From positions 160,529 through 224,528 of the IMG/VR virus record IMGVR_UViG_3300044712_001462: 64,000 nt of DNA, one strand, 5' to 3'. The translations under genes and the position numbers were made by a program. The notes below the pieces were generated by a model. The model searched no databases. It saw nothing but the letters and a program-made list of their open reading frames with translations, and was not told the DNA's origin. Within the stretch, counting starts at the first letter, position 1, and the number at the start of each line of letters is the position of its first letter. This document shows, piece after piece, positions 11,536 through 57,629 of this stretch.

Positions 11536-11553
11536 TAATAGCGATAACAGAAA
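11536..11553. promoter_or_regulatory. Conserved intergenic box, copy 1 (TAATAGCGATAACAGAAA)
   Basis: 14-bp core identical in five intergenic sites. Confidence 0.7.
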
Positions 11554-11819
11554 CTACACAGGCAGCCAGATGCTGTCCTCGACTTCCACAGGGTGAAGCC
11601 CCGTGTCATGTAGCCACTGCTCTACGAAGTCAGACAGGTCCAAATCTAGCTCGTCCTTACACAACACGACCTGTTTACCGTTCACAGTGTCATCCACGAA
11701 AAAACAGAATTGCAACTGCTCCACGAGAAGCTCTATCTGCTCGAGTTGCTTGACTTCTTCATCAGTCAGATTTTCAAATATCCCTGACCTGAATCTAAAT
11801 CTCGGCAAAGCTAATCCCA

Positions 11820-12401
11820 TTACGCGCTCTTCCTTTTCTGTTCAAACCGGTCTGCAGCCCAGGCTGCCTCTCCCGTAAATTCCACTTCCTCATAGTCCAC
11901 AGGCATGTAATCCCAGACACACGCCATCATGTAATCCGGGTCGTCGTACCCACAGCATCCTTCCACGTAGAGTCCATCCTCGTCGTAGATCGAAAACTGG
12001 TAATACTCGCCGTTGACCCAGGTGTTGTAGGATCCCAGAAAATTGCGGGCATACTCCTTACGCTTCTCATAATCCTTAGGCAGGAACTTGGCGTTCTTGG
12101 AGATAATGAGCCCACCTACATCCGCAGTATCCCAGCGACATTGCATCCCCTCGCCGCGGAGACTCCAGACCGTACCGCTGTGCTGGTAGCAGCTGAGAAT
12201 GAATGCCGAACCTACATCCAGCTTTCTCCGCATCCCGATTGTGGCAGGTGTCGGATCACCAAACTCGTCTCTTGGACCCAGGTACTTGAAAGGGTCCTGG
12301 AAATTAACATGCCGATCACAGAACGAAACAATCTCCCAGTCGCCATACTTACACGGGCTTTCAGCATCTGAATCGTATTCCAGCCGCACTTCGTAATTCA
12401 T
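11820..12401 (-). CDS. Hypothetical phage protein
   Basis: YQHSG..WS...CRWDT..VG...WVNGEYY...CCGY pattern; ATGA overlap at start. Confidence 0.7.
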   Translation of the reverse strand: MNYEVRLEYDSDAESPCKYGDWEIVSFCDRHVNFQDPFKYLGPRDEFGDPTPATIGMRRKLDVGSAFILSCYQHSGTVWSLRGEGMQCRWDTADVGGLIISKNAKFLPKDYEKRKEYARNFLGSYNTWVNGEYYQFSIYDEDGLYVEGCCGYDDPDYMMACVWDYMPVDYEEVEFTGEAAWAADRFEQKRKSA

Positions 12402-12622
12402 ACTGGATCCCAGATATCCAAAGTCATGCGAACATCCGTCACGGATTGAAACTGCGCTGGGCAAATACTCACCAGGTCGCCCTCTTCGTCATAAACTCGC
12501 TCGTCTTCTTGTGAGACATCTAACACACGTAACACGACACACCTCCTATAAATGAAAAGAGCCTCACCGGTTTCCCGATGAAGCTCTTTATCGCGCGCCA
12601 CTCTTTTCAAATGCCAGAGCAA

Positions 12623-13012
12623 CTACTCTGGCTGTTTGATCTCGGTCTTCTTGTCAATCATCTCGATATACAGAGCGATACCGTACTTGCCGCACAACCT
12701 GGCAGCTCGCACAAGGAACTGCCACTCTGTAGCAGGATCGCTCAGTAGAAGTATCACGCCCGGCTTCTTACCAGTCAGTTCAGCGTAGTGCAGAGACTGG
12801 CCAATGGATTCAGCCCATTTCTTCGGGTAATCTACCTCGATCGCGTAATCATCACTAAGGAGATCTACACGTGAGCCGTCTTCCAGCCGCACCTCTGTTT
12901 TAGCCTTGTACTTCGGAGCCAGGCGAGCGCACTCGTCAAGCTCCCCTGCAAAAGCGGAACCCAGGCACAACACACCGCACAACCAGCAGATTATCTTCGT
13001 TGCAGAATTCAT
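12623..13012 (-). CDS. PD-(D/E)XK-like small protein with N-terminal signal peptide
   Basis: Hydrophobic N-terminus ending AFA; EVRLEDGSRVDLL..AIEVD..KWAESIGQSLHY. Confidence 0.6.
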   Translation of the reverse strand: MNSATKIICWLCGVLCLGSAFAGELDECARLAPKYKAKTEVRLEDGSRVDLLSDDYAIEVDYPKKWAESIGQSLHYAELTGKKPGVILLLSDPATEWQFLVRAARLCGKYGIALYIEMIDKKTEIKQPE

Positions 13013-13030
13013 AGCTTAAAACTAGCGCAT

Positions 13031-13288
13031 CTACTTGTCTTTGAGCAACTGCAACTCGTCACACCAGTCCACATACCTCTCTTGGTCAACTTCGGCCCAT
13101 TCACCATTCGGTCGAAAGCAGTTATCCTCAATCGTGTTACTCATGTACTCTCGCAGTAACTCCTCATACCAGGCCGCATACTTCTCCTGGTCAACATCTG
13201 CCCATTCAGCCATCGGGCGGCAATCATTGTCCTCAATCATGTTAATCATCTGCATGTGCAGCTCGTCCTCGCGAGAAAGTGTTGTCAT
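13031..13288 (-). CDS. Hypothetical protein with internal duplication
   Basis: IEDNDCRPMAEWADVDQEKYAAWYEEL / IEDNCFRPNGEWAEVDQERYVDWCDEL. Confidence 0.7.
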   Translation of the reverse strand: MTTLSREDELHMQMINMIEDNDCRPMAEWADVDQEKYAAWYEELLREYMSNTIEDNCFRPNGEWAEVDQERYVDWCDELQLLKDK

Positions 13289-16994: not shown

Positions 16995-17024
16995 AAAAAA
17001 CCCACCAGATGGAAAACTGGTGGG
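16995..17024 (-). terminator. Intrinsic terminator
   Basis: CCCACCAG/CTGGTGGG stem followed by T6 on the minus strand. Confidence 0.75.
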
Positions 17025-17056
17025 ATTATGAACTACGTCGGAGACGGGCGACTAGA

Positions 17057-17263
17057 TCAAGCGTCTTCTTCCTCGAGCACTCGGTACTGACGACGACACT
17101 CCGTAGCCAAATCTCTCAGATTCGACGAGAACTCTTCTACACTGTACCGACCAAACAGCAGCACATGGGCCAATTGAACTAGTTTGTCCTCGACCTCTGG
17201 ACGGTGAGCTGTGAAATGCTGATTGTCGCATACTGTCAACAACTCATACAAAGCATGAAGCAT
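17057..17263 (-). CDS. Hypothetical protein
   Basis: ATG 17263 with GAGGG SD, directly after box copy 2. Confidence 0.6.
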   Translation of the reverse strand: MLHALYELLTVCDNQHFTAHRPEVEDKLVQLAHVLLFGRYSVEEFSSNLRDLATECRRQYRVLEEEDA

Positions 17264-17271
17264 GTGATCCC

Positions 17272-17290
17272 TCTCTAATAGCGATAACAC
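17272..17290. promoter_or_regulatory. Conserved intergenic box, copy 2 (TCTCTAATAGCGATAACAC)
   Basis: Exact core match; intergenic. Confidence 0.7.
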
Positions 17291-17297
17291 AAAGTCC

Positions 17298-22974: not shown

Positions 22975-23044
22975 CAGTTGATTAACTGTTCCCAGGCTAG
23001 CGCAGAAAGGATTTCGCCGTCAACAGAAGATTGAGATAGCGGTA

Positions 23045-23401
23045 TTAGGGACCACCGCTGAAACAACTGAGGTCGCGCCAGTCATCGACTCCCCAGGGGG
23101 CCTCGGAGTCGTAATATCGGCCGTTGTAGCGAACAAAGCAGTGATAGGCATAATCATCCGTATCTTCGTTCACCCCGGTCAGCTCGTCTCCCCAGAACGC
23201 CTCCGCCCCGGGTACCAAGCCACAAACCTCCTCAGCAAACCACTCGCAGTCTCCAAAGTTGACACCTGCCGCAGAGCTGTCAAACAGCTCTTTCCAGAGC
23301 TTCACTAAAACATCGATCGCCTCGGTTATCGTCCACGACCTCTCTTTTAAAGCATCAATGCGCTGACGAAATGTCAGATAATCGTCGGACACAGTAGTCA
23401 T
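23045..23401 (-). CDS. Hypothetical protein with possible Cys-His-Asp triad
   Basis: NFGDCEWFA...HCFV...YYDSE. Confidence 0.5.
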   Translation of the reverse strand: MTTVSDDYLTFRQRIDALKERSWTITEAIDVLVKLWKELFDSSAAGVNFGDCEWFAEEVCGLVPGAEAFWGDELTGVNEDTDDYAYHCFVRYNGRYYDSEAPWGVDDWRDLSCFSGGP

Positions 23402-26870: not shown

Positions 26871-26920
26871 TGGTTAGCTCCCGTAAAAAAAAAACGAACA
26901 CTAAACCTGCCTCGTCAAAG

Positions 26921-26949
26921 ATTATGACACGAAAAGTGCCAAAATTGAG
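26921..26949 (-). promoter_or_regulatory. Putative phage promoter, copy 1: CTCAAT-N17-CATAAT
   Basis: Shared architecture with 35652-35680 and 41427-41455. Confidence 0.65.
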
Positions 26950-26955
26950 TTAGCG

Positions 26956-26994
26956 AAAACAGAAAGGGCCAGTAAGCAAAAGCTCCTGGCCCTT
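26956..26994 (-). terminator. Intrinsic terminator after the 1590-aa gene
   Basis: AAGGGCCAG/CTGGCCCTT stem with T-rich tail. Confidence 0.7.
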
Positions 26995-27022: not shown

Positions 27023-30000
27023 TTACGCCATCGAGGCTCTCGACAGCTCTCCACCTCCGCCACCTTGCGGATAAAACTGTCCCCAGAAGTTCTTCATCGT
27101 ATCATCGTCTTTGTCCTGGTTTTGAGCCAAGAGCTGCCCCAACATTGCACTGGTAGCGTTAGGCTCTCCTCCGTCCCGCGCAATCGACGGAGGAACCGGA
27201 TCACGGTAACGCGGACTCAAACCAATCTGCGGAGCGAGTCGGTTATAGTCACTCAGCACATTACTTTTACCGTTCTGCCACAGACCCTTTATCAGATCCG
27301 TAAGACCTCCACCCTGCAGCATCGTGCCTAGACCCTGCATGACTGGGGACTGCGACATGGCATAAGCACCCGGAAATGCGCCTCGTATGCCTTCTTGAAC
27401 ACTATTCTGTACCTGACCTGGCAACTCTTTCATACGCTCATCAACATACTGCTTGCCCTGGTCCATCATCTGCTGACCTCGATCCAGGAACGACTCACCC
27501 ATGGCCTGTCCCTGATCCATAAACTTATTACCCATCGCGTCAGCACGACTTAATGTGTCATTGCGCATGTTGTTGGCCATATAGAGACCCGTGCCCATCA
27601 TGCCCGCACTAGCCGCCACAGGACCGTAGGGAGCCATTGCCTTAGCCGCGGGAGCCGCATTACGAATAACCGTACCAGCACCTTGCCTCAAAGCACCGCC
27701 AGCGCGCCCCACTCCTGAGCGGAAATAACCAGACGCCTGCGCCGCACCCGGAATAGCCTTAGGTAGAGCCTGAGTCGTCATTGACGATGTTCCTGCCGCA
27801 CGTGCAGCATTCAAGCCCGCAAGTGCCTCGGGACTACCGGCAGGGCCATGTGGAACAACCGACCCGCGATAACCACTGGGAACCTGAGGAGATGCAAGAG
27901 GTCGAGCTGCACCCGCATTATTTGCAGCCGCCCTAGCGGCATCATCCGCTGTGTTCATGACACCTTTGGCAACGTCGTCTGTCATCCCAGCCGCACCACG
28001 AGCCACGTCGTCTGCTGAACCTGCTACACCTTTTGCCACATCATCAACACTGCTGACACCCTGTCTAAGCAGACGCGGTGCGAGCGATTTCACACCAGTC
28101 CAGAGACCCTTACCGATCGTTATTGGATTAATCGCTTGTTTCTCCGAAGACAACTTTGTCTGGAACGGACTTTTCGGAGCGGCTAAAGCCGGAGACTTTG
28201 GAACAGCACCGACAGGATTAGCCATCTGGTTGCCACCGGATCCCGGAGGCGAGAACGTGCCATGTGTCTGTTGTATGTTCTTAGGCATTGCCATCTGATT
28301 CATGCTAGGATTGAGTGAAGCGCCCGTAGCAGGGCTGGGTTGAGCCATACTCTTATTCCAGGCTTGAGAGTATTCAGGTGTCATCGCTAACCGCGCATCT
28401 TGTTCAGGTAGACCGGCTTTACGGCGCATTTGACTATCCTGCATGTACGCGGCAACCGGTTCCATAATACGACCATCAGGCCCGTATCCGTACCGATAAG
28501 GTTTACCGTCAGGCTGCGACAACGTGCCACTGGTTTGTTGCATCATCTTACCTCTTGGATCACTGGATCCTGAGCCAGCCATCTGGGGAGCCTGCTGCGG
28601 AGTCATACCCGGTGTTCGTATAACCGGACCAGGATTAGTTCCACCCAGCATATTGCCACCCGCTACATCCTGAGACGGATCAGGCTTACGCACACCTGCC
28701 GTCTGCGGCGCTTGCAACGCGGGATTGTTAGCCATCAGCTCCTGAGATTGCTGCATCTGAGGAGCCTGACCCGGGCTCGCCGGTTGTCCACCCGCTGAAT
28801 AAGTAGGGCTTCCACTTCGACGCATCGCCTCTGCCCGCTCATACTTCTGACGCATCGCTTCGCGCATGCTGATCTGAGCCGGGCTGAGACTGTACTGGGG
28901 CTCTGGTTTTTGCGCTGCCGCGATCATCGGACTGCCGTCAGGCCGCAATACAGGCCTTCCATCCCGACCAAGAACGGGATTTAGTTGTCGGCCCGAGCCA
29001 CCTGCCCTGTTTGGCAAATATCCACCACCAGGTGCGGTCATGGGCATCCCATTCGGACCCATCAGCCGTGTTCCACCGCCAGAAAGCTGATTGTCCACAG
29101 CCTCTCTATTAGCGCGATTACGATTCATGCGTTGCTGAGCACCCCAAGCTTCCTGACCTTGCTGGCTCATGCCGCCGGGCATCACCGGAGCATTAAGGGA
29201 TGCCTCAGTCTCCGCTCTCGCCTTCGCAGAAACTTCATCAGCAGAAAGCCCTTCATAGCCGGGATTAGATGGTGCCGGTCGAGGAATAGGCGCAGCAGGC
29301 GACTCACCAGGTGCTGCACTACCTTGAGCCGGAGCATTCTGTCCAGAGGGCTGTAATTGGTTCGCCTGCCCCATCGCCTGAGGTGCTTGCATCGCAGGAG
29401 CAGGCGGAGCTGTCATCTGCTGAGGCTGACCGCCCACTGTCTGGGTCTGACCGCTATTCGCAAACGAGGGGTTATTCCACTTCGTGTAATCAGGACGCTG
29501 ATCGGGCTGTACACTCTCAGGAGCCTGCGCCTGCATTCGCTCAAGCCTTCGAACTTCACTTCTATTCCCAGCTCGCCGAGCCCGATCAAGCTGAGGCTGG
29601 AAGCGACTCGCCCACTCCGGAGGACCGGCTGGTTGTTGTGGGGCTTGAGGAGTTTGAGCCAAAACAGGCGTCACAGGAGCTTGCAGAGCCGGATTAGCTG
29701 GCGGCTTCGGACCCGCTTGCATCGCATAATCGTTGATCATACCCTCGCCAGACTGCGGAGCGCCTTGCATTGCATAATCGTTTATCATCTCTGTGCCACT
29801 CGGTAAGTCCTTACGCTCACCGACTGGTGAATTCGGATCCCAAGGACCTTGGCCAGCCATCTGATTGGCCAAAGCACCGGCTGACCAGGGCTTCGTAGAG
29901 CGACCTGTCTCATAGTCCTTCGCGCTAACGGGATTGGTGTTATTCGCAATGTCATGCACGACCTGCGGAATCACACCCTGTTGCTGCTCACGATCAAAGG

Positions 30001-31795: not shown

Positions 31796-31810
31796 GTCCT
31801 CGAGGCTTGG

Positions 31811-31852
31811 AAAAAGAGCGGACCCAACTGTGAGGAGGAGTTGAGTCCGCTC
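31811..31852 (-). terminator. Intrinsic terminator
   Basis: GAGCGGAC.CAACT/AGTTG.GTCCGCTC stem followed by T5. Confidence 0.7.
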
Positions 31853-31879
31853 CAGGGCCAGTAGGCGGGGAGCAAGCGC

Positions 31880-32254
31880 CTACTTAATGAACTCTTGACC
31901 AGCTTTCGTCAGAGAATAATAGCCGTAGCCTTCTCTCCAATCCCGATTAACCAGACCGTCTGCCACATACCCAGCCAGAACTGCTACAGCCTCTCGCCCA
32001 CAACCGGCTACACTCCGAAAAGTGGGAACGTTGATCGAGCGATACTCGTGGATAATCTTCAGGTGATCTGCCACGGTCATGTCGCCCGAATCCTGCACCG
32101 GCTCGGGTTCAGGCTCGGGCTTCTTCTCTACTGCGGATACCGGCTCTGGCGGTTTAACAACAGGTGCCTCCACCACAGGCTCAGAAACAGCATCTACACG
32201 CGTCTCACCAGGCAGAGGCTCGACAGCAAACGGTCTTTCAGGCTTCTTAGCCAT
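31880..32254 (-). CDS. Protein with C-terminal winged-helix-like domain
   Basis: P/E-rich linker, then ...LAGYVADGLV...YYSLTKAGQEFI (wHTH wing signature). Confidence 0.55.
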   Translation of the reverse strand: MAKKPERPFAVEPLPGETRVDAVSEPVVEAPVVKPPEPVSAVEKKPEPEPEPVQDSGDMTVADHLKIIHEYRSINVPTFRSVAGCGREAVAVLAGYVADGLVNRDWREGYGYYSLTKAGQEFIK

Positions 32255-33114
32255 TATTTCCCCTTCTTAGACTTCTTTTTCTTCTTACCACCACAGCCAG
32301 CTGTTTTGAGTTCTGGCTCGGCTCGATCTACTGCTTTACCCAGCAGGAGATTCGATACACCCTTACCCAATCCTTTACCTGCCATCATTCCACCAGCTGC
32401 ACCAACTCCGGTGCCAGCCAGTGCGCTGCCAATACCCGCAGCAGCAGCAAGACCTGGTTTATCTTTCAGCTTTTCAGCCAGTAAAGCACCGAGCACACTT
32501 CCTGCACCCAGACCACCTACCGCACCAACTCCCAAGCCTGCTCCAGCTCCTGCGCCAGGAAGCACACCTTGAGCCGCTCCGCGGATCTTCTGTTTATCAG
32601 GAGCCTGCCCAGCACCATAGGCTGCGCCCAGAACGGCACCGGTAGGCGCAAGGCTCGCGCCAGCACCTAGTGCACCTAAGCCTAAAGCTGCTCCACCGCC
32701 AGCCAACGCCGCACTCGCACCGTTTGAGCCCAGATACTTTTTGATCTTCTCGATAGTGGCCTGCAACTGACTAGGATCCGCAGCTTGCTTAACCGGAGAC
32801 TCTTCTGACATCTGTGGCTTCTTCTGCTTAGGCACTTTGACCTTACCCAGAGCACCCACCACGCTCTCGAAACGAGCATCATCCCAAGACCGACGTGTAA
32901 CTGCTTTCTTTTCGCCTTCCATGGCTTCTTTTCTCTCAGGTAAACCGGTGTGTTTGGTACTCGCAAAATGCTTGGCGTCAGTCTTACTGATCGACTGAGC
33001 GATGTCTGCAATATGTCCGGATGGTGCTTTGGCCTTACCCTGTTGGATAGCATGTACCCAACCGAATAGGCGCTGCTGGCTTCGACTGTGGGCTGGAATA
33101 GTTACACCCTCCAT
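32254..33114 (-). CDS. DUF3008-like N-terminal domain fused to a Gly/Ala-rich hydrophobic (glycine-zipper) region
   Basis: PAHSRSQQRLFG...DAKHFASTKHTGLPERK; GxxxG repeats; start uncertain. Confidence 0.65.
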   Translation of the reverse strand: MEGVTIPAHSRSQQRLFGWVHAIQQGKAKAPSGHIADIAQSISKTDAKHFASTKHTGLPERKEAMEGEKKAVTRRSWDDARFESVVGALGKVKVPKQKKPQMSEESPVKQAADPSQLQATIEKIKKYLGSNGASAALAGGGAALGLGALGAGASLAPTGAVLGAAYGAGQAPDKQKIRGAAQGVLPGAGAGAGLGVGAVGGLGAGSVLGALLAEKLKDKPGLAAAAGIGSALAGTGVGAAGGMMAGKGLGKGVSNLLLGKAVDRAEPELKTAGCGGKKKKKSKKGK

Positions 33115-33176
33115 GACCTGTCTACGGGGTCGTATCACTATAGTATGACCCATCTTAGACACAGCGCGCAAGCCGT

Positions 33177-34844: not shown

Positions 34845-34859
34845 TCGATCACCCCTAAC

Positions 34860-34878: not shown

Positions 34879-34881
34879 AGA

Positions 34882-35645: not shown

Positions 35646-35651
35646 TCATGT

Positions 35652-35680
35652 ATTATGCCGCAAAAAGGTCAGAAATTTAG
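35652..35680 (-). promoter_or_regulatory. Putative phage promoter, copy 2: CTAAAT-N17-CATAAT
   Basis: Same architecture as copy 1. Confidence 0.65.
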
Positions 35681-41314: not shown

Positions 41315-41426
41315 TTCCCCCGTACTGCTCAAGCAGTAAACTCTTGTCATACAACCACTTATGTAATACCCATGACAGCACTCCCTGATGTGACGTTGAG
41401 ATACAAAAGCTAACGATCACCCAGGT

Positions 41427-41455
41427 ATTGTGCCTCAAAAGTGGGGGAAATTTAG
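41427..41455 (-). promoter_or_regulatory. Putative phage promoter, copy 3: CTAAAT-N17-CACAAT
   Basis: Same architecture as copy 1. Confidence 0.6.
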
Positions 41456-41555: not shown

Positions 41556-43376
41556 CTACTCGACTCTGTCATCGTCATCGTAGTAGTACTCGCCGTCCTC
41601 CGAATCCCCAGGAGAGGTATCCGGCAGTTCATCTAGCGCCAAAATCTCAGAGTCACTCTCGGGCCCAGGCTCATCGACCTCGGGCTCCTCTTCTTCCATG
41701 TCGTCAGGCTCCCAGTCAGTACTGATCCGACTCAGAACCCCTCCGATTGGAGGAGAGTCAAGCAACCCGGTAACATCCGGTAGCTGGAACAAAGGAAAAG
41801 GCTCCAGACCAGGCAAACACAGATAAGGGAATGAGCCAGTACTGATGCCACCAGCCCAACCTTGAAACACAAATACCAACACTGTGTCATAAAGCTCTGA
41901 CAACTCACGTACACGTTGCTGAAGTAACGGTGCCGTCTCAAACTGCTCCAGCGTCACCATGTGCCCTTCCACCTGGAATACCAAATACCAGAGGGGATCA
42001 CTTGCGGGCAAACTGGGCCCAGTCTTTGACTTTCTTGACGGCTTCTTCGGCTGCTGACTGGGCTGCGGCTTCGAGCTGGGATTTGTTTTCTTCGACAAAG
42101 GAGTCCTCACCACTCTTAATGATCTCGTTGGGCCGAAAGATCAGAGACACCGTATTGCGCTGCACCTGCTCCGTCTCTGACTTACTAATAACAACCACCT
42201 GCGGAGCTGACATGGAAACAGGCTGAGCCTTTGTTTCCTCCAGAAAGCCGTTCACCATCTCTGTTAACGACGGTTGAGACTTCCCGTCATTCCGCACCCA
42301 CTCACCTAACACACAGTCGTAGTACTCAATCGCGGAGAAGCAGGCCACACGCAGATAATCATTCGTCAATGTCATCCACTTCCTCCTCGTCCTCATCCTC
42401 GTCTTTAGCGCTATTGCCGGTGTTACAGATCGGCTCTGCCAAACCCTTGTAGACGAGCTCGAAGTGAGGCATGACCGGCTGCTTGCGATCCTCCAGCTTC
42501 AACTTGCCTGTACGACCTGCCTGCATCAGCGCATAGCGCGCCATAATCTCACCGTCGTCTGCATACACAGTCAGATAGGCCACCGGGATCTTAACCTGCG
42601 TGGAGTAGAAGTGAGGGGCAATCGTAATCCCCTCAGGCCGCTTATCCAGCTTGTCCCCTTTTTTGAGCCAGCCGTCTTTAACCAGCACCCCGGATTCCAT
42701 CTCACCTGTAAAATTCAATTCAATGTGCATCGTTGCTCCCATAAGGATTGTTAGCCGCTTTCAGCGCGTCCCGAAAATGCAGCGTATCACCAAATATCAT
42801 TTCTTCGTTGTACACATACCTAGGAGACATCCCCCCGGTAATGCACATCTTCTGAATGAAGTAATGAGAACCCATCGTGCTTTCAACAACCGAAGCATGC
42901 ACTTTTGCGTACTTAAAGCCGTCCACACAATGTGGCTCTTGAACCTCAATCTCCTGCGCTCGTACGCGGTACAACACATTCTGCTTACTATCATTCAACG
43001 CCAACGTCCCAAAGTACTGCAGAGCAGTCTCTCCCCATTCCCTGGGTAGGAGCTGAATATGGTGAGCCCAGAAAGGTGGCACATTGAGTAGCAGAGGACG
43101 GTTGTGAACAAGCAGCGTAGGCGGCTCATCAATCCCCATCTCCGCCATAAAGACCACCCAAGGATCCACCGGCCAACTCAATACCGTATACACCAGCGCC
43201 GGAGTAAACAGCACGTAGTCTTTGGCATAGCTGGCCAGCGGAGTATGCGGAGCCAGCTCAACGACTTTCGGCTGCACAGACAGAGTGTGACCGACGTCGA
43301 CCGAAGGAGAAAAACCTGTCGGAAACAACTTGGGTAACTGATCTACGACGCCGGTCATCACTCCGTCCGAACTCAT
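41556..43376 (-). other. Four hypothetical ORFs (41556..~42010, 41998..~42375, 42359..42742, 42720..43376)
   Basis: Contiguous co-directional ORFs; two have acidic C-termini. Confidence 0.65.
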
Positions 43377-44122
43377 GCACTCACCTTCAACTTCGTCTTT
43401 TTCGCGGGTAAGGTCTTCACCAAGTCGACTCCATTCGCAATCGATTCACGCAGCGCAGGAGCCAGGTTCAAAGCGTTCGCAACTTCTAAGCAGACTCGTA
43501 AGTCATCTTTCGAGTTCACACCTGGTTTACCGTTCTCAAAGTCAGCAATCTCCAATCGTGATAGCGATAACTGAATTGCCACCTTTTTCGCCCAGCGCCC
43601 CGGTCGCAACAAACCATCCAGATCGCGATAACCGTGATTTAACCACAGTCGCTGCGGTAGATCGTTACAGCCGGATTCGGCGGATTCCGCTGCCGCCAAC
43701 TTGGCGAACGTGGCGATATCAAACCCTACCAAATACACACTATCCGATGCAAATACACCCGTTTCCACGTCAGTGTCCGAGAACTCTTCATCCTCGTCTT
43801 CATCCTCCACATACCCGCCATCGTACTGAGACAACTGAGGATGAATCTCGTTGATGAAGCGCGCAACCTCCTGACCGATATTCTTATCAAAGTGCACACC
43901 GGTACCCGCCTCGGCGCTATACATCCACACGTCATCCAGCTTCCCGAAGTAAGGAATCTTCAGACCCTGAATCAGGAACTCCTCCCGCTTCTCCGCCACT
44001 TGCGCCGCTGCCGTCTCCGCTTTCGTCACATTCTTGTTCGGCTGGAACTCCGGCACCCATTGCCCGAAGTCGCTCCGCAATGACGTCTTGAATCCGACAA
44101 AAATCAAGTCTTTGACTGCCAT
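43373..44122 (-). CDS. Hypothetical protein, possibly degenerate DnaQ-like exonuclease fold
   Basis: IFVGFKT (ExoI-like, lacking D/E), LVGFDIATF (ExoII-like), DDLRVC (ExoIII-like). Confidence 0.4.
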   Translation of the reverse strand: MAVKDLIFVGFKTSLRSDFGQWVPEFQPNKNVTKAETAAAQVAEKREEFLIQGLKIPYFGKLDDVWMYSAEAGTGVHFDKNIGQEVARFINEIHPQLSQYDGGYVEDEDEDEEFSDTDVETGVFASDSVYLVGFDIATFAKLAAAESAESGCNDLPQRLWLNHGYRDLDGLLRPGRWAKKVAIQLSLSRLEIADFENGKPGVNSKDDLRVCLEVANALNLAPALRESIANGVDLVKTLPAKKTKLKVSA

Positions 44123-48775: not shown

Positions 48776-49154
48776 CGTCCGACCCCTTCATAGGCAGCTC
48801 CTCAATATCAACACTCTCCGAGTAGTAGCCATTCGACTCGCCAATCCAACGACTGATGATAGTTGCTCCGTCTACCTTAAACGTCAGTGTTGTCTCTGTC
48901 ACATGGTCGCTGTACTGTCTTTCCGGTCCCTCCTCCTCTTCATGAGTGGCAATTTCAATCACTTTTCCAATCAGCGCATCCCAGTCGCCCTCAGTCGATT
49001 CCATCCTGACTACCTCACAACAGTCCTGGTAGTGGTGGATCATAAACTGACGTCCAGACTCCGTGGTCAGCATGATCTTTCCCTCGTCGTCATCAATATC
49101 AATGTACGTCAACGTTTCTCCCACCAATGATTCTATCCCAACAGGTCTTCTCAT
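48768..49154 (-). CDS. Conserved hypothetical phage protein
   Basis: HYQDCCEVV...WIGESNGYYSESV pattern. Confidence 0.7.
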   Translation of the reverse strand: MRRPVGIESLVGETLTYIDIDDDEGKIMLTTESGRQFMIHHYQDCCEVVRMESTEGDWDALIGKVIEIATHEEEEGPERQYSDHVTETTLTFKVDGATIISRWIGESNGYYSESVDIEELPMKGSDGE

Positions 49155-50032
49155 TATTTCCCCTTACAGTTCTCGCTCTTCCACTTCAGATCACAATCCA
49201 GGCACCGCTGCTTCTGCAAAAACTTCGGATCGTGCAGAGCATTTGGATTCCCGCACATTGGGCACAGCGCCTCCACATACGTCCTCAGATGCGTAGCCTG
49301 AGCACACCTGTCCTTACCGATCGGACACTGGTGACACGGAATCTTGTACTGACACGAATACTTAGGCTGCCCAGGGAACCGGGCCCGAATACGCTCTTTG
49401 TTGTACGAAACAAACGAAGAGGGCACCCTCACCTGATCGAACTTTGGCAGGTTCTCCCTTGCGCACAGCTCTGGCGTGAAATACCCCCACAGTCGCAAAC
49501 CCACGAGTTGATCTTCCGTTGCAAACGGATAGTCACCATACGCCGCAGAAAACCCAAGATCGTGGGCCATGTACTTACAAAAACGGCGCGTCCAAAATCG
49601 ATGGGTCACCAACCCTGCTGCGGAACCAGCCAGGATACGGAAGCAAAAGATCGCTCCCCGTTGACGTGGTTTATAGAAGTGAGGCGTAGTCTCTACTACT
49701 TGGAGAGGCATCCACTCGGAAACTGTCTGGCCTATCCACGGTAACACCGGCTCGAACTCCAGCAGCTTCGACTCATTCGCTGCCAGACGCCACGCTGCTT
49801 GCTGTAGATCAGCTGCCAGCAGCTTGGTGTTTGCTAACCCCAGTAACGACAACTCCACCGTACGCTGATAATGCGAGGCTGGAAAAGCATCAGTAATATC
49901 CCGGCAAAAATCACCGAAAACGGATCCAGCCAAGACGCGATTAACATACGGGGTTCCTGCTTTTGCTAACTCAGCCTTCGTGCTCAAAATCTTCTTGACC
50001 GAATACCGCGGTAAATCAACGGATACAGCCAT
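49154..50032 (-). CDS. Hypothetical protein with Cys-rich C-terminal Zn-binding region
   Basis: C..CHQC..C..H..CPMC..CLDC. Confidence 0.7.
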   Translation of the reverse strand: MAVSVDLPRYSVKKILSTKAELAKAGTPYVNRVLAGSVFGDFCRDITDAFPASHYQRTVELSLLGLANTKLLAADLQQAAWRLAANESKLLEFEPVLPWIGQTVSEWMPLQVVETTPHFYKPRQRGAIFCFRILAGSAAGLVTHRFWTRRFCKYMAHDLGFSAAYGDYPFATEDQLVGLRLWGYFTPELCARENLPKFDQVRVPSSFVSYNKERIRARFPGQPKYSCQYKIPCHQCPIGKDRCAQATHLRTYVEALCPMCGNPNALHDPKFLQKQRCLDCDLKWKSENCKGK

Positions 50033-50035: not shown

Positions 50036-50482
50036 TTACTTTCTATGCCAAGACGCGATCAGATCTTCTCCCCCCATTTCCTCGCAGTAGCAATCCTCTT
50101 CCACAACCAGATAAGTATCAGTCACGTCGTTGTGAAAAAACGTTTGAAACTCATCACAACCAGAGTACCCAACGCATTGCCATTCAGGCGGGAACTCCAG
50201 TGTATACTCGTTCACATACCGAGAGAAATCCGAACCTTCCTCCAGCAGCATCTGTACATCCCAAGGAGTACCCCCCATCTGAAAATACCGACAAACAGCT
50301 GTCAGTAAGAACGTATCACGAGTCAGCTGCGCATCGCTTTCTGGGCCCGGAGGATAGTCTTGAACACATCGTGGAGGTATCACAAGCTCACCACCCACGC
50401 GTAACGTCACAAACAACCGATGACCCAGCGATGATTGCGTTGAAAAAATCCGGTAACCGTCATACGGATTGATCTGCGTCAT
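50036..50482 (-). CDS. Hypothetical protein
   Basis: Starts directly after box copy 4. Confidence 0.6.
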   Translation of the reverse strand: MTQINPYDGYRIFSTQSSLGHRLFVTLRVGGELVIPPRCVQDYPPGPESDAQLTRDTFLLTAVCRYFQMGGTPWDVQMLLEEGSDFSRYVNEYTLEFPPEWQCVGYSGCDEFQTFFHNDVTDTYLVVEEDCYCEEMGGEDLIASWHRK

Positions 50483-50488
50483 ACTTAC

Positions 50489-50510
50489 TTTCTGTTATCG
50501 CTATTAGAGA
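50489..50510. promoter_or_regulatory. Conserved intergenic box, copy 4 (inverted: TTTCTGTTATCGCTATTAGAGA)
   Basis: 22-bp identity with copy 5. Confidence 0.7.
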
Positions 50511-50917
50511 CGACACAGAGCCGCCAGACCCAGCCACATGCGCGTATTAAGTGGGTCGTCCACAACCTCGGCGTCACCCACCGCGATAATCAATCTCTCG
50601 GCTGCCTTGGTCTGCTCCTCTGAGAGCGTATACCCCATCGCTACCCCGGCTGCAAAACAGGCTTCGAGCTTTTCCCGCATGACATAACTGTATAGCGGAA
50701 TACGGATTAGTTCAGAATTTGCTGTAACAATCGTCCAATCAATGGGGTTCCGAAGAGCATTACCATTTACCGGACCATTCGCCACATACCAGGCCGAAAC
50801 ACCAGCTGGGTATTGTGATTCACGTAGCACCGCAACCGGATTAACACCCTCGGCAACACCGGAACAATCCACTTTTACGACATCCACCAACATCAACTCA
50901 TCTCCCTTGCGTACCAA
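50504..50917 (-). CDS. Hypothetical protein
   Basis: ORF track. Confidence 0.6.
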   Translation of the reverse strand: MVRKGDELMLVDVVKVDCSGVAEGVNPVAVLRESQYPAGVSAWYVANGPVNGNALRNPIDWTIVTANSELIRIPLYSYVMREKLEACFAAGVAMGYTLSEEQTKAAERLIIAVGDAEVVDDPLNTRMWLGLAALCRL

Positions 50918-53952: not shown

Positions 53953-54486
53953 CTAACTAGGCTCGGAAAAGTTGCTCTCTAAGAAGCTGTCAAACGATTC
54001 CAGCACCAGCACCCGTGTTTCGCTGCACACCAACAGACGAGTCCCTGTTCCGTGCGCGGAAATGCCCATGTCGTGCAGGATGAAACCGTTCTTCACATAA
54101 GGCCACTTGATTACCAAGCCATAAGCTTTGGAATCCCCAATGTCGTCGGGGATGTAATCCACAAACTCGTCATACACCTTAGCCAGACGTGTCTTCTCAA
54201 ACTTTGTCATCAACCTGGCTACCGACACATCCTCTTCCACTTTGTACAGGGCATGTGCCACCAGGTAGAACGGCAACTCAGGAAACACAGTGTGGAAAGC
54301 CTCTAGCGTTAACCGCGGCTCACCATACCTCTCTTCTGAGTACTCAATCAGTTCCCGTTTGCGCCACGCTGAGGAGAAAAACGTCAACAGCCGGGACACC
54401 ACGCGATGTTCCCAGCTGTCGTCATTCCGTTTCTTCAACTCATTCAGGCTGCTCAGGAAACGCGGTTTAGGCGTCTCATCGGTCAT
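53953..54486 (-). CDS. Hypothetical protein (weak resemblance to Hjc-type fold, no catalytic motif)
   Basis: WEHRV...PFYLVA...YGLVIKW...LESFDSFL; ATGA-coupled to the recA-like gene. Confidence 0.5.
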   Translation of the reverse strand: MTDETPKPRFLSSLNELKKRNDDSWEHRVVSRLLTFFSSAWRKRELIEYSEERYGEPRLTLEAFHTVFPELPFYLVAHALYKVEEDVSVARLMTKFEKTRLAKVYDEFVDYIPDDIGDSKAYGLVIKWPYVKNGFILHDMGISAHGTGTRLLVCSETRVLVLESFDSFLESNFSEPS

Positions 54487-55994
54487 AGAGAATTCATCCT
54501 TCGTTCATTTTCCTGTCGCACTGCCTCCAACTGTTCTTGGAAATCCCGCCCTGGCTCAAACTCTGTCCGAGTCTTAATAGCCAGAAGCTGCTGCAATCCC
54601 TTAACGATCGCCGGATCGGCCTCAATCAACTTACCGGCCTCCGTTTTGGACACAGGATCCGACTTGGGAATACTCAGCGCCTTCGACCACACCCGACCTC
54701 CTGTTACCAGCGTCAGATCACACACCTCCGCAATTTTCTTTGCTCGACCCTCCTTGTAGCTGAGCAAAAGATCCACAATGGCCATCGGCCAGTTCCACTT
54801 CGTACGCTGCCGGACATCTCCAGTTGGCAGCACACAGTAATCCCACTCGATCGTGACATGCAGCGGTGTTCGCAGCGTTTCACCCATCGAGTTCTTATAG
54901 CAGTCGATCGTCAGCTTTCTTCCTCGAGTCTCCAAAATGGAGTCGTCATTTGAGGTACGCGAGAAATTCTGCGCCTTATCCGCAGACATCTGTATCTCAA
55001 ATGACTCTTGGAACAGAATCGTACGACCTCCACCGATCACCCTCTCGGTGTGAAAACCACCCTCCGCCTTCTTCGGCTTCATATGATTCACACCCACTAC
55101 GGCCATCGGCCACTCCGCAATGTCCTGAGGGATCTTCTTCAAGAACTGCGTAATCTGCAGCGCCTCATGGGGATGGGCCCGGTCAGCAAACCCAGCCTTC
55201 TCAATTCGCTCCTGACTCTCTTTCGAGAGCTTGCCAGTCAGCGAATCCACAGCGAACATCACCGGGAAGGTGATACCCGTCGCTGGGATCTTGTGCTTTG
55301 CATCCCCTGTAAGCATCAACTTCTTAGCCAGACCGATCTCCTCTTGGAGAATCGCCTGCCAGTCATCGGTACTCTTAGCGCGCCGCACCTTCATGACCTG
55401 CACACCCGTCTCGTCCGGGTAGCCCATAATCGATTCGAACCAGTCTGGTGAGAGCTTCGACTCGTTCTCAATGAGGCACAGGTAACCACCGGCCTCTGCA
55501 AACCAGCGCCCTACCTCCGCTACCAGACCACTCTTCATCGTTCCATGCGTACCCACCAGCTGATAAATCAGGCCCAAGGGGAAGTGCGAATGCTGGGTCA
55601 GATACTGGAAAGCCAGCGGACATTTGATACCCAGCATCATCTGTCCGGCTTCGCCACCTACTGAGGCGGAAGTAATCCCTTCTTTGGCCTGCTGCTCCTG
55701 CACCGTCGCCATAAGAAAGCGACTGATAGATTTCTTGGCTGTCACGCGCGGCTTGGGCTCAGCCTCTGCCTTCTTTTTCCCCCGTTTGACAGGAGCTACC
55801 TCCGCAGCGGGCTCAGGCTCTTCAACAGGCGGAGATGCAGGCTCGATAGCCACCGGTTCCTCTTTTGGCTCCTCGCCAGGACGGACTGGGCGTTTCCCAG
55901 CGTGCAACTTCCGCTTAAACGACTTGAACTCGGGTTCACCCGCGGTCTGCAAACGATCGCGAATCCGCTTAAATACATCACTTCTGATATCCAT
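54483..55994 (-). CDS. RecA/UvsX-like recombinase
   Basis: Walker A GTHGTMKS, IENE, FAVDSL, VNH, GGR, KN motifs. Confidence 0.85.
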   Translation of the reverse strand: MDIRSDVFKRIRDRLQTAGEPEFKSFKRKLHAGKRPVRPGEEPKEEPVAIEPASPPVEEPEPAAEVAPVKRGKKKAEAEPKPRVTAKKSISRFLMATVQEQQAKEGITSASVGGEAGQMMLGIKCPLAFQYLTQHSHFPLGLIYQLVGTHGTMKSGLVAEVGRWFAEAGGYLCLIENESKLSPDWFESIMGYPDETGVQVMKVRRAKSTDDWQAILQEEIGLAKKLMLTGDAKHKIPATGITFPVMFAVDSLTGKLSKESQERIEKAGFADRAHPHEALQITQFLKKIPQDIAEWPMAVVGVNHMKPKKAEGGFHTERVIGGGRTILFQESFEIQMSADKAQNFSRTSNDDSILETRGRKLTIDCYKNSMGETLRTPLHVTIEWDYCVLPTGDVRQRTKWNWPMAIVDLLLSYKEGRAKKIAEVCDLTLVTGGRVWSKALSIPKSDPVSKTEAGKLIEADPAIVKGLQQLLAIKTRTEFEPGRDFQEQLEAVRQENERRMNSL

Positions 55995-56022
55995 AAGTCT
56001 CTATCACTCTTTGATTTAGCGC

Positions 56023-56067
56023 AAAAAAGTGGGCGGCGGCACCCGTTACTTAAGTACCACCGCCCAC
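56023..56067 (-). terminator. Intrinsic terminator
   Basis: GTGGGCGG/CCGCCCAC stem followed by T6. Confidence 0.7.
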
Positions 56068-56090
56068 CGGCTTCAGGAGAAAACTGTTAC

Positions 56091-57602
56091 TTAGCTGGCT
56101 TTCTTCTTCTTGAGACCCTTCAAGGTAGCCAACAGCTTTTGAGGAACCGGCTTCACAGTCGCCTTCGGTGTTTCAACCACAGGCTCCTCATCATCGACTT
56201 CCGACTCTTCCACCTCCACGTCATCAACATCAGCGTAAGACGAGGGCTTAGGAACCGTAGCCGAGGTTCGCGTCGGCCGAGCTGACGGCGGCACAAACGC
56301 GCTCTCCTCAATGTCCGAAGCATTCTCATCCAGAGTCGTGTCGTATTGGACGCCTTCTTGTGCGTCCGAGTCATCCATGAGCTCTGCCTGAGGGGCTGCG
56401 TGATAAGTACGGCTCTTCAGCACACCTCTTACCGCATCCGTAAAGAACTCGGGGTGATCTAACCAGCCGAATTCCAACAAATTAGGTTCCTCCAGATAGG
56501 CATGCGCCATCATGACGCAGATCTCTTCCTGATCAGGGAAGTGCAACAGATCATCCCACCACATTACGTTCCGATACACTGCCTCCTCGATCTCCGGCTT
56601 CTCCGTCAAGCTCGGGCGGAACAGCTTCTTACGCCCGCCCAGCTCATACGGGAACGTGTCGAGAATCGCAGCACCCCAACCATCACCCTTGAAGTCGTCG
56701 GCCATCGGCTTGGTACCGTGACTAGTGTGTCGGTTCAAGAAGTCGCTCACCAGCGAGTCGCAATCCTCGTCAGTAGCATCTTGCGGAATCTGCAAGTTGC
56801 CGAGCTTGATGATCAGATCCATGCACGTCGACGGATCGAAGAACGAGACAAACTTACCCCGCTCAAGATCCACGATATCCCCGTGGACAAACGCGGTGTG
56901 CTGGTCATCCGGGTTATCCTCGTATTCCGGGGCCCGGGCATTCACCAGACCCAGGAACGACGACTCCGCGGTATTCGAGACCTGCAGAATCTGCGGCAGA
57001 TCCTTCTCGTTTGCTCCGAGCGGAATCCCGTTCTTCGCAAACACGTCGTCACCGTTCTGGTACATCAGCACCTGGGCAAACCCGATGGACTGTGGATAAC
57101 GGATCAGGCGCTTATCCACATAGGAGCCCCATTTCGCTGTCATCACGTCCTTGCCCCGAACGATCGCCTCAGCCATCTTCTTGGCCTTCGTAATGGCCCG
57201 GCTGAACACGATATACGGATTCGAGTTGACGTCGTAATCGCCCGACAACACCTGGCGAGGATCATAGAGCAGGAAGGTGAACTGCTGGCTCAGGCCCACC
57301 TGGCGAGCCGCCGGGACCGAGCGCCACCAGTCCGAGAACGATCCTTCCTCATTCACATCCAACCGGGTCGGATCAAACGGCCCATCCGGATTATCGTAGT
57401 TGAAGTTCGGGAGAATCCGGACCACACACGGGAACTTGCCCTTCCAATTCGGGCGACGGAGATCGCACTGCGGAGCTGACCGTTTAATCGTGCGATCATC
57501 CTTGGGAGCAAATCGGTTGCGTTGACTTGTTTCTTTGTGCGTCCAAGTACGAGGACGCGGAGCACCGGCATTGGCCGGACGTCGAATCTGATTCTTAGCC
57601 AT
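56091..57602 (-). CDS. Probable ssDNA-binding protein (gp32-like position and architecture)
   Basis: VVRILP N-terminal motif, acidic disordered C-terminal region, located between polymerase and recombinase. Confidence 0.45.
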   Translation of the reverse strand: MAKNQIRRPANAGAPRPRTWTHKETSQRNRFAPKDDRTIKRSAPQCDLRRPNWKGKFPCVVRILPNFNYDNPDGPFDPTRLDVNEEGSFSDWWRSVPAARQVGLSQQFTFLLYDPRQVLSGDYDVNSNPYIVFSRAITKAKKMAEAIVRGKDVMTAKWGSYVDKRLIRYPQSIGFAQVLMYQNGDDVFAKNGIPLGANEKDLPQILQVSNTAESSFLGLVNARAPEYEDNPDDQHTAFVHGDIVDLERGKFVSFFDPSTCMDLIIKLGNLQIPQDATDEDCDSLVSDFLNRHTSHGTKPMADDFKGDGWGAAILDTFPYELGGRKKLFRPSLTEKPEIEEAVYRNVMWWDDLLHFPDQEEICVMMAHAYLEEPNLLEFGWLDHPEFFTDAVRGVLKSRTYHAAPQAELMDDSDAQEGVQYDTTLDENASDIEESAFVPPSARPTRTSATVPKPSSYADVDDVEVEESEVDDEEPVVETPKATVKPVPQKLLATLKGLKKKKAS

Positions 57603-57607
57603 AGTTC

Positions 57608-57629
57608 TTTCTGTTATCGCTATTAGAGA
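57608..57629. promoter_or_regulatory. Conserved intergenic box, copy 5 (inverted)
   Basis: TTTCTGTTATCGCTATTAGAGA fills most of the polymerase-SSB gap. Confidence 0.7.

Follow-up and report, generated by a model that had tools for sequence, protein, structure and literature searches.

Organization of the box family in the phage genome

The stretch analysed here (the window) comprises 64,000 nucleotides, positions 160,529 to 224,528 of the 224.5-kb uncultured jumbo phage genome IMGVR_UViG_3300044712_001462, in which nearly all genes lie on one strand. Five exact copies of the 14-mer TAATAGCGATAACA were located at 11536, 17276 and 34864 on the + strand and at 50493 and 57612 on the - strand, with none expected in 100 dinucleotide shuffles. 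All five lie in short gaps between minus-strand genes, with the upstream stop codon from 3 nt inside the core to 8 nt before it and the core ending 9-19 nt before the next start codon. The box at 11531-11554 (+; 35.6 bits) fills its junction, the upstream stop being 4 nt before the core and the core ending 14 nt before the ATG of a 66-aa ORF (11321-11521, minus strand). The box at 17271-17294 (+; 36.0 bits) has a core ending 12 nt before the ATG of a 68-aa ORF (17057-17263, minus strand), which is followed by an intrinsic terminator at 17001-17024. The core of the box at 34859-34882 (+; 34.1 bits) ends 19 nt before the ATG of a 98-aa ORF (34548-34844, minus strand). At 50488-50511 (-; 35.7 bits), the upstream gene's stop codon is the TAA/TAG of the core, which ends 10 nt before the ATG of a 148-aa ORF (50036-50482), and this box is intact in a relative's contig (run X9). 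The box at 57607-57630 (-; 36.0 bits) fills the 31-nt gap between the PolA stop (57634) and the ATG of a 503-aa ORF (56091-57602).

Four variant boxes complete the set of nine in the window. The variant TAATACCGCTATCT at 23029-23052 (-; 22.9 bits) is non-coding, with the upstream gene's stop in the box arm. The variant AGTTAGCGAAAACA at 26943-26966 (+; 27.1 bits) lies just after a terminator. The variants TAATCGCGCTAATA at 29102-29125 (-; 22.0 bits) and TGATAGCGATAACT at 43554-43577 (+; 28.2 bits) lie inside a 1590-aa ORF (27023-31795) and a 249-aa minus-strand ORF (43373-44122), respectively. The earlier note, which reported the five exact copies, was thus confirmed in its observation, although it placed them 5-15 nt before a start codon, a range exceeded by the 34864 copy at 19 nt. 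Of its three weaker matches, those near 23035 and 43560 are real but that at 6902-6923 is only one half-site (CTCTGATAGC) with a negative position weight matrix (PWM) score, and the sites at 26943-26966 and 29102-29125 were missed.

Genome-wide, the five copies belong to a family of 33 PWM sites, 7 of them exact, all scoring 19.8 bits or more with nothing between 12 and 19.8 bits, against 0.75 hits in shuffles. The full element is a 24-26 bp dyad, nWYTS-TRWTAKC|GMTAWYA-SARWn, with a 7+7 core and symmetric flanks out to ±13, and the partial dyad proposed earlier (T..TA.CG.TA..A) matches the near-invariant columns of the family. Seventeen sites are non-coding, 4 lie at gene edges and 12 are intragenic, in a genome that is 6.8% non-coding, corresponding to an about ten-fold enrichment in non-coding DNA (p about 3e-10). 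Intragenic sites are weaker (25.2 against 30.8 bits, p=0.0004). About a dozen sites fill a whole gene junction, with the arms doubling as stop codon and ribosome-binding site, and 13 boxes end 2-19 nt before a start codon. Flanks beyond about 26 bp share no similarity.

Symmetry, orientation and a separate promoter class

The logo is mirror-symmetric when oriented by gene strand, and the half-sites vary independently. Watson-Crick complementarity equals the column-shuffle expectation at all 12 pairs, and the canonical site has A.C, A.A and G.A mismatches. Orientation is 17 forward to 16 reverse overall and 5:8 among start-proximal sites. In the related phage genome G001, which has its own box family, an invariant asymmetric centre reads GCCA 8 times and TGGC 7 times at start-proximal sites.

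A distinct, oriented sigma-type promoter class, CTAAATT-N16-CATAATA, was found in nine copies, all intergenic and all on the gene strand, and is conserved in G001. Three lie in the window on the - strand: CTCAATT-N16-CATAATC at 26920-26949, CTAAATT-N16-CATAATA at 35651-35680 and CTAAATT-N16-CACAATA at 41426-41455, the latter two with no box nearby. Boxes overlap two of the nine promoters at classic operator positions, one at +1 to +24 and the other at the -35 element. The latter is the box at 26943-26966, whose flank CTCAATT is the -35 element of the promoter at 26920-26949, putting the box centre at about -41. With boxes masked, no other long motif was enriched in intergenic DNA.

Even spacing and sequence turnover in related phages

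Three relatives (G001, G002 and G003) carry box families with different sequences, and closer partial contigs carry variants at the same junctions. The relatives L129 and L135 carry their own palindromes at the junction after PolA, and a box abuts the ATG of a gene for a 342-aa helix-turn-helix (HTH) protein in four lineages. Boxes occupy syntenic positions in G001, 6 of 61 syntenic intervals being boxed in both genomes (p=0.008). Spacing, about one site per 6.8 kb in the present genome, is far more even than chance in all four genomes, with gap CVs of 0.53, 0.45, 0.35 and 0.43 against about 0.9 for random placement (combined p about 6e-9), whereas terminators give 1.25 and gene starts 1.1.

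Searches for a candidate reader protein

No binding protein was identified. Pfam profile searches found no ParB, KorB, HTH_3, HU, HTH_17 or sigma region 2 domain, and PF02195, PF08535, PF08857 and PF17762 gave no match in a six-frame search of the genome, although a highly diverged ParB/KorB member cannot be excluded. The best candidate is the 342-aa LuxR/sigma4-like HTH protein. Its domain model (pLDDT 86.9) retrieved PDB hits that were almost all LuxR-type DNA-binding domains at the top, but with non-significant scores (E of 1.8 or more, TM 0.40-0.48); Pfam GerE matches were sub-threshold in 2 of 15 homologues and whole-protein searches found nothing. The recognition helix of this protein is almost invariant between lineages whose boxes differ.

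The interpretation in the earlier note was partly supported. Its central inference, a double-stranded DNA protein-binding site rather than an oriented promoter or RNA signal, is supported by the symmetry without covariation, the orientation counts on a one-strand genome, the free flipping of the G001 centre and the separate promoter class. The 124-aa protein (31880-32254, minus strand) proposed as a reader does look like a winged helix, its C-terminal ~70 residues resembling MarR/HTH_24 winged helices, but it has no Pfam or PHROG hit and no orthologue in G001 and is thus a weak candidate. The assignment of 50036-50482 as SSB could not be confirmed, the UvsX-like recombinase (54483-55994) is not directly preceded by a box, and a stoperator or operator function is not shown. 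With 5 of the 33 sites in view, the two most telling properties, even spacing and lineage-specific variants at syntenic positions, could not have been seen.

Interpretation of the boxes

We consider the boxes most likely to be docking sites for a dimer of a sequence-specific DNA-binding protein acting genome-wide, a reading to which we assign a probability of about 0.5. The protein would most likely be phage-encoded and co-evolve with the box, because each related lineage has a different box sequence at the same kinds of places, although a host-encoded reader cannot be excluded since the host is unknown. In this view, the 33 copies form a spacing-constrained network rather than a set of local switches, a site being placed in whatever non-coding DNA is available near the required position, its arms being recruited in short junctions as stop codon and ribosome-binding site, and weaker forms lying inside genes where no gap is available. 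Bound dimers would act independently of orientation on the co-directional gene array, either as barriers or insulators to transcribing polymerase or as loading and nucleation points for a protein that spreads or slides a few kb, so that even spacing gives whole-genome coverage; at the two promoter-overlapping sites they would act as ordinary operators. Our data establish the symmetry, the lack of RNA pairing, the orientation independence, the non-coding enrichment, the even spacing, the syntenic conservation with sequence turnover and the distinct promoter class, whereas that a protein binds, which protein it is and what binding does, including any arrest of polymerase, are inferred from sequence alone.

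A promoter or entry site for the phage's own multisubunit RNA polymerase (RNAP), for example of a middle or late class, with its symmetry tolerated or a dimeric activator used, is the leading alternative but seems unlikely. The phage encodes a phiKZ-type beta/beta' RNAP and only nine sigma-type promoters exist for about 334 genes; several boxes follow terminators, the spacing and placement just upstream of genes would fit one signal per transcription unit, boxes precede orthologous genes, including RNAP-cluster genes, in two genomes, and internal and antisense late promoters do occur in AR9 (PMC5312081). However, the element is mirror-symmetric and orientation-free, whereas experimentally mapped promoters of phage multisubunit RNAPs, such as those of AR9 and phiKZ, are short conserved motifs upstream of many genes that are asymmetric and oriented with a fixed start (AAATATATATTAT-N6-G, AACA-N6-TA/G and TATG; PMC5312081). 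The ribosome-binding site lies in the box flank and one ATG overlaps the flank, so a transcription start would have to lie inside the box, and some boxes, also in G001, are followed at once by a terminator. The conserved bipartite promoter already fits a sigma-dependent phage RNAP, and the distant relative Arash packages RNAP plus a sigma factor in its virion. Sequencing runs labelled RNA behaved as DNA and gave no usable RNA data. A classical operator regulon, in which a dimeric repressor or activator switches the gene downstream of each box, including its own gene and the RNAP genes, with spacing as a by-product, appears somewhat less likely still. It would account for the two operator-positioned boxes, the box abutting the HTH gene in four lineages, which looks like autoregulation, and the box heading the gene run into the RNAP gene in both genomes, and the HTH domain model resembles LuxR/NarL-type dimeric DNA-binding domains, with SPBRE and its repressor MrpR as a precedent. 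Nevertheless, 31 of 33 boxes are not at any recognisable promoter, the dozen or so filling junctions leave no room for one, 12 are deep inside genes, local regulation does not predict even spacing in four genomes, the HTH fold matches are not significant, and the HTH helix does not co-vary with the box.

A role in DNA transactions, as a recombination hotspot or cassette boundary, a site-specific nick, or a priming or replication site, would favour regular spacing but is improbable. Several boxes flank small genes of unknown function, one unit is box-gene-terminator (17001-17294), recombination between repeats explains indels in Cluster O phages (PMC4351075), and the symmetry resembles crossover sites with a central dinucleotide. 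However, the unrelated flanks give no sign of transposed or duplicated cassettes, the one indel seen in a close relative (48776-49157) is not bounded by boxes, no joints between boxes appeared in contigs, and 33 recombination sites in both orientations would scramble a genome whose synteny with G001 is well kept. An mRNA hairpin hiding the ribosome-binding site or serving as a processing site is disfavoured. Although the box lies on or next to the ribosome-binding site and some copies, such as that at genome position 159572, could form a 10-bp hairpin with a GAGAG 3' arm, the middle-of-stem pair 5/20 is complementary in only 16 of 33 sites, the commonest copy has three mismatches, the G001 arms show no covariation either, 12 sites are intragenic and sites occur next to terminators.

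Comparison with described systems

The closest precedent is the unexplained 17-bp dyad repeat of Cluster O mycobacteriophages (TGTTCGGNNNCCGAACA; 34 copies in Corndog), which also lacks meaningful orientation, has a similar split of locations (14 intergenic, 10 at gene 5' ends and 10 internal), coexists with 8-9 separate sigma-type promoters with few copies near promoters, and was inferred by its authors to be a dimeric-protein site (PMC4351075). The shared kind is descriptive, not a homologous family. Its sequence and host group are unrelated to ours, its genome is about 70 kb, its arms are invariant rather than degenerate, its intergenic copies cluster in one operon rather than being evenly spaced over the genome, and it is shared unchanged by all five cluster members, whereas here each lineage has a different box. 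The SPBRE repeat of the 134-kb Bacillus prophage SPbeta, found in silico in many intergenic regions, was shown by ChAP-seq and EMSA to be the binding site of the master repressor MrpR (PMC10516654), but has about 9-10 sites, all in promoter regions of a temperate phage, and maintains lysogeny; here most sites are not at promoters and no lysogeny genes were seen.

Stoperators of Cluster A mycobacteriophages (L5 gp71; PMC9283540, PMC6550527) are likewise scattered through short intergenic gaps, where a bound protein blocks elongating RNA polymerase, the roadblock mechanism proposed here, but are asymmetric 13-mers bound by a monomer. Stoperators are also oriented with transcription, whereas our site is symmetric and orientation-free. 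The KorB-OB sites of plasmid RK2 (12 OB sites) and ParB-parS are palindromic 13-16 bp sites, dispersed and orientation-free, that load a sliding or spreading clamp, which would make even spacing useful. The cores look alike (OB, TTTAGC-S-GCTAAA; the present box, TAGC|GCTA; L129, TAAAAGC|GCTTTTA), but half-site spacing differs by one base pair and no ParB_N, ParBc_2, HTH_ParB or KorB domain was detectable in the genome. The start-associated sequences (SAS/ESAS) of Cluster K mycobacteriophages, whose function is unknown, lie a few nt upstream of many start codons, include the ribosome-binding site, are conserved upstream of the same gene families and, in ESAS, add imperfect inverted repeats (PMC3203893), but SAS are asymmetric, essentially all in one orientation relative to the gene and not found inside genes, and regular spacing was not reported.

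Implications

Dispersed palindromic repeats have been noted in a few phage genomes and mostly left unexplained. The present case adds a spacing far more even than chance in four related genomes, which argues for a genome-wide rather than gene-by-gene role, a sequence that turns over between lineages while positions are kept, which offers a handle for finding the reader by covariation, and a clear separation from a conserved, oriented promoter class that probably serves the phage's own sigma-dependent RNA polymerase. A more speculative reading, possible but unlikely on present evidence, is that the boxes are cis-elements of a previously undescribed chromosome-organising system in a clade of RNAP-encoding jumbo phages, with evenly spaced loading or anchoring sites, one per 6-8 kb, for a fast-evolving phage protein that would partition the co-directional 220-kb genome into regular domains for transcription insulation, protective coating, compaction or replication, box and reader co-evolving so that each lineage has a private code. 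If the boxes organise or insulate a 220-kb genome transcribed entirely in one direction, this would be a new principle of jumbo-phage genome management and would also supply orthogonal protein-DNA pairs; if they turn out to be ordinary operators or promoters, the result still gives the first regulatory map for an otherwise unannotated phage clade.

Distribution of the box in the phage genome

The genome is a single 224,528-bp viral contig with 52.8% GC, assembled from a rhizosphere metagenome and rated 100% complete by CheckV, of which the window is the last 64 kb. Our gene calls gave about 334 genes, nearly all on the minus strand. The five exact copies of TAATAGCGATAACA were confirmed where the earlier note had placed them, at 11536, 17276 and 34864 on the + strand and at 50493 and 57612 on the - strand, with none expected by chance, and the 14-mer therefore reads in either direction on the gene strand. 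Each of the five copies fills a short junction, with the upstream stop codon located from 3 nt inside the core to 8 nt before it and the next start codon following the core by 9-19 nt. A scan of the viral collection for the exact 14-mer gave only single matches per contig, about the number that we roughly estimated to arise by chance for a 14-mer in a collection of that size, and was thus uninformative.

A PWM seeded on near-exact copies converged on 33 sites in the genome, nine of them in the window, all scoring 19.8 bits or more and with nothing between 12 and 19.8 bits, while shuffled sequences gave 0.75 hits. Of the weaker matches proposed in the earlier note, 23029-23052 and 43554-43577 are members of the family whereas 6902-6923 is only one half-site, and two further window sites, 26943-26966 and 29102-29125, had been missed. 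The element is composed of two heptamers, T-R-W-T-A-K-C|G-M-T-A-W-Y-A, with symmetric flanks that are pyrimidine-rich upstream and purine-rich downstream and with A...T at +-13, the whole element being about 24-26 bp. The common half-sites are TAATAGC, TGTTATC, AGATAGC and TGATAGC, and they combine freely. A subset of half-sites gives CTGT-N8-ACAG, which resembles an SOS box, and TGTTAT...ATAACA appears Zur/Fur-like, but the invariant central CG and the other half-site types do not fit such host-regulator sites.

Symmetry and orientation of the box

The flanks initially appeared to covary (CTCTC...GAGAG, GTTTG...CAAAC), as would be compatible with an RNA hairpin. However, column-shuffle controls showed that complementarity equals the compositional expectation at all 12 pairs, the commonest copy has three mismatches, and the mid-stem pair is complementary in only 16 of the 33 sites, leading us to reject the hairpin. 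Half-sites that vary independently about a dyad axis are the signature of a symmetric double-stranded DNA site.

Orientation against the gene strand was 17:16 overall and 5:8 among the 13 start-proximal sites. When oriented by gene direction the logo mirrors itself, with the exception of position +-7, where the AGATAGC half prefers the upstream side because it often supplies a TGA stop codon. The best test came from the relative G001 (234,886 bp, complete), whose box has an invariant asymmetric centre (CCA) that, at 15 start-proximal sites, reads GCCA 8 times and TGGC 7 times on the gene strand. In G001, the start-proximal boxes whose centre reads TGGC sit 2-13 nt (one at 20 nt) from the ATG, usually with no separate ribosome-binding site, so that the centre GTGGA may serve as one, while those reading GCCA sit 7-22 nt away and are followed by a GAGG-type site.

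A separate oriented promoter class and other intergenic motifs

With the boxes masked, the enriched intergenic words assembled into CTAAATT-N16-CATAATA, extending to CTAAATT-N16-CATAATA(c)(r)TG. There are nine copies, three of them in the window (26920-26949, 35651-35680 and 41426-41455, minus strand) and six elsewhere in the genome, all with exactly a 16-nt spacer, all intergenic and all on the gene strand, with none of comparable quality (2 mismatches or fewer) on the other strand. The same bipartite element occurs in G001, conserved as CTAAAT[AT]-N16-CACAATA. Matches to the classical sigma-70 consensus were below chance. The phage encodes a phiKZ-type beta/beta' RNA polymerase (RNAP), with the beta and beta'-like parts fused in one 1911-aa ORF that carries a LAGLIDADG homing-endonuclease insert (genome 116475-122210, outside the window), and a 971-aa ORF of the window (35677-38592) gave a weak intein-splicing hit. 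A megablast search against isolated phages found no match. By RNAP the nearest isolates are about 33% identical, and the nearest isolated relative, Salmonella phage Arash at about 32% identity, has RNAP beta, beta' and a sigma factor among its most abundant virion proteins. The bipartite promoter is therefore a natural candidate for the promoter of the phage's own, possibly sigma-dependent, polymerase. Two boxes overlap two of the nine promoters, one covering about +1 to +24 (genome 159572) and the other, at 26943-26966 of the window, providing the -35 element through its flank, with the box centre near -41.

A third intergenic motif consists of inverted repeats ATTTACG...CGTAAAT with variable spacing, at about 52756 of the window and at genome positions 19531, 19905 and 96998. 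In G001, a cluster of TAGCCTA/TAGGCTA inverted repeats surrounds a TATAAT hexamer at 180.17-180.24 kb and looks like a separate operator-promoter region.

Genomic context of the boxes

In a genome that is only 6.8% non-coding, 17 boxes lie in clearly non-coding DNA, 4 at gene edges and 12 inside genes (p about 3e-10), and the intragenic sites are weaker (25.2 against 30.8 bits, p=0.0004). About a dozen boxes occupy an entire junction, with TAA/TAG/TGA of the upstream arm as the stop codon and GAGAG/GAAAG/GGAGG of the downstream flank as the ribosome-binding site. Others abut intrinsic terminators on either side, but no consistent relation to terminators was found. Functional annotation of the box-adjacent genes returned almost exclusively genes of unknown function, with the exception of an RNase H. 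The window copies lie in and around the replication module, which includes a DnaB-like helicase, a primase, a UvsX-like recombinase and PolA (57634-61014), a family A DNA polymerase with an N-terminal uracil-DNA-glycosylase (UDG)-superfamily domain and a 3'-5' exonuclease domain. A close relative in an activated-sludge run (about 97% identical) lacks the 382-bp segment 48776-49157, which is one small ORF, and has 6 other letters in its place, with breakpoints that are not at boxes. The only runs labelled RNA behaved like DNA and are represented by short contigs, yielding no transcript-end evidence, and no joints between oppositely oriented boxes were seen.

Lineage-specific boxes in related phages

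Relatives are present in soil, sludge and groundwater samples. Our PWM was absent from all relatives, and the boxes had to be rediscovered de novo in each lineage, but each closer lineage has its own palindrome at the same places. Directly after the PolA stop, the relative L129 (63% PolA identity) has TAAAAGC|GCTTTTA, while the relative L135 has GTCCTTTTAA-TCA-TTAATAGAAC there, plus a perfect second copy after a terminator. Directly abutting the ATG of a conserved 342-aa gene, the sequences are CTGTTATC|GCTATTAGA-ATG in our phage, CTGTTATT|GTTAACAGA-ATG in the relatives L165/L166 (77% identity), CGTAATAGC|GCTTTTACAATC-ATG in the relatives L163/L164 (72% identity), and a variant of its own in G001. 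More distant homologues of the 342-aa gene have no box at its start.

Three larger relatives were analysed over their whole records. G001 has 37-42 copies of YMAAAA-GCCAN-TTTTKR, about half of them non-coding, in both orientations and with no arm covariation. G003 has AAAAC[C/G]GTTTT, with 10 exact copies against 0.005 expected and 19 at one mismatch or fewer, and G002 has TCAAAA-N4-TTTTGA, with 8 perfect copies. Between our genome and G001 there are 74 reciprocal-best orthologues with a mean identity of 38%. Of 61 syntenic intervals, 12 carry a box in each genome and 6 in both (p=0.008, although longer intervals are favoured in this test), and these include the junctions before the 504-aa baseplate-like gene, before the 342-aa gene and after the beta' gene.

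Spacing of the boxes

The coefficient of variation (CV) of the gaps between boxes was 0.53 in our genome, with a mean gap of 6.8 kb and no gap under 1.85 kb, whereas random placement gave 0.96, as did placement restricted to intergenic segments (p=0.0002). The value was 0.45 in G001 (p below 0.0002), 0.35 for exact copies in G003 (p=0.0016; 0.47 at one mismatch or fewer, p=0.0009) and 0.43 in G002 (p=0.027), for a combined p of about 6e-9. Strong terminators (CV 1.25) and random sets of gene starts (CV 1.1) do not behave this way. Even spacing was not part of the original finding, and we found no description of it in the papers we read. Four inter-box gaps, at genome 153803-159572, 172059-177799-183557 and 189630-195387 (the last three lying in the window at 11531-17271-23029 and 29102-34859), fall within 30 bp of each other (5740-5769 bp), but this apparent preference for about 5.75 kb was noticed post hoc (p about 0.003), was not replicated in G001 and is regarded as a curiosity.

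Candidate DNA-binding proteins

Pfam models for ParB_N, ParBc_2, HTH_ParB, KorB, HTH_3, HU/IHF, HTH_17 and sigma region 2 found nothing in the genome. The first four of these gave no support by homology to the boxes being ParB/KorB loading sites, and that resemblance is retained only as a working analogy. The 342-aa protein (genome 108549-109577, L125:18549-19577, minus strand, outside the window) is encoded in the RNAP gene cluster, in the same gene order as in L163, and carries an invariant sigma4/LuxR-like block, EARILARQTDEEIA...IEWYE.LFFNVRDRL. It has 22 metagenomic homologues, no Pfam family and no match in isolated phages. Whole-protein fold searches found nothing, and only the excised domain, which was modelled confidently (pLDDT 86.9), gave a consistent HTH picture, with top PDB neighbours that are almost all LuxR/FixJ/NarL-type HTH domains or sigma region 4 but none of them significant (E of 1.8 or more, TM 0.40-0.48). 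Its putative recognition helix is nearly identical in lineages whose boxes differ and is conserved in distant phages without a box at this gene. It therefore more plausibly reads something conserved, such as the -35-like CTAAAT element or the polymerase itself, with its gene being a conserved target of the box system, and it could be a sigma-like specificity factor. A homologue (P0014, 31% identity) lies in a 1.04-Mb contig (L170) among cellular-looking genes such as ammonium transporters and caspase-like peptidases, which may be a clue to a host or to a prophage remnant. The 124-aa protein (31880-32254 of the window) suggested in the earlier note as a candidate reader of the box does resemble a winged helix, but it has no orthologue in G001. 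Other conserved small or HTH proteins regarded as candidates are a 248-aa protein (genome 59964-60710) and a 216-aa protein (genome 115772-116422). Two further conserved proteins gave sub-threshold sigma4/GerE signals.

Comparison with known systems and interpretation

The closest precedent is the 17-bp dyad repeat of Cluster O mycobacteriophages, which has 34 copies, no orientation and a similar split of locations, coexists with 8-9 sigma-type promoters, and was inferred by its authors to be a dimeric-protein site of unknown function (PMC4351075). SPBRE/MrpR of SPbeta shows that such in-silico repeats can turn out to be master-repressor sites (PMC10516654). Stoperators share the roadblock logic considered here but are asymmetric and oriented. 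KorB-OB and ParB-parS share the symmetry, the dispersal and a loading-site logic that would make spacing meaningful, but no such protein was detectable in this genome. The SAS/ESAS of Cluster K share the association with start codons but are oriented (PMC3203893), and the mapped promoters of phage multisubunit RNAPs are asymmetric with fixed start sites (PMC5312081).

The main rival to a protein-docking site is a promoter or entry site for the phage RNAP, which is favoured by the position of boxes just upstream of genes, the scarcity of other promoters and the spacing. The symmetry, the flipping centre in G001, the lack of room for a start site and the existence of a conserved bipartite promoter argue against it, although on present evidence, without usable RNA data, this reading remains in contention. 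The observation made in the earlier note holds and is substantially extended. Its interpretation is supported in part, since the core inference of a double-stranded DNA protein-binding site is supported while the specific mechanism and the candidate reader are not established.

The analysis itself establishes a symmetric, orientation-free double-stranded DNA element that is selected for, as indicated by its non-coding enrichment, its syntenic retention and the weaker copies inside genes, and that is lineage-specific in sequence, distinct from the oriented promoter and evenly spaced over whole genomes, whereas protein binding and what it would achieve are inferred. The simplest model consistent with all of this is a docking site for a dimeric DNA-binding protein that co-evolves with it, which would be needed at regular intervals and placed wherever the compact genome allows, with its arms co-opted as stop codon and ribosome-binding site. 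Bound proteins could be orientation-independent barriers or insulators on a one-directional gene array, or the boxes could be loading or nucleation points for a protein with a range of a few kb, which would explain the spacing, while at two promoters the box would act as an ordinary operator. We regard the box as a dispersed palindromic phage repeat, a kind of element already described, to which this clade adds two features, namely even spacing and the clade-wide turnover of sequence at retained positions.
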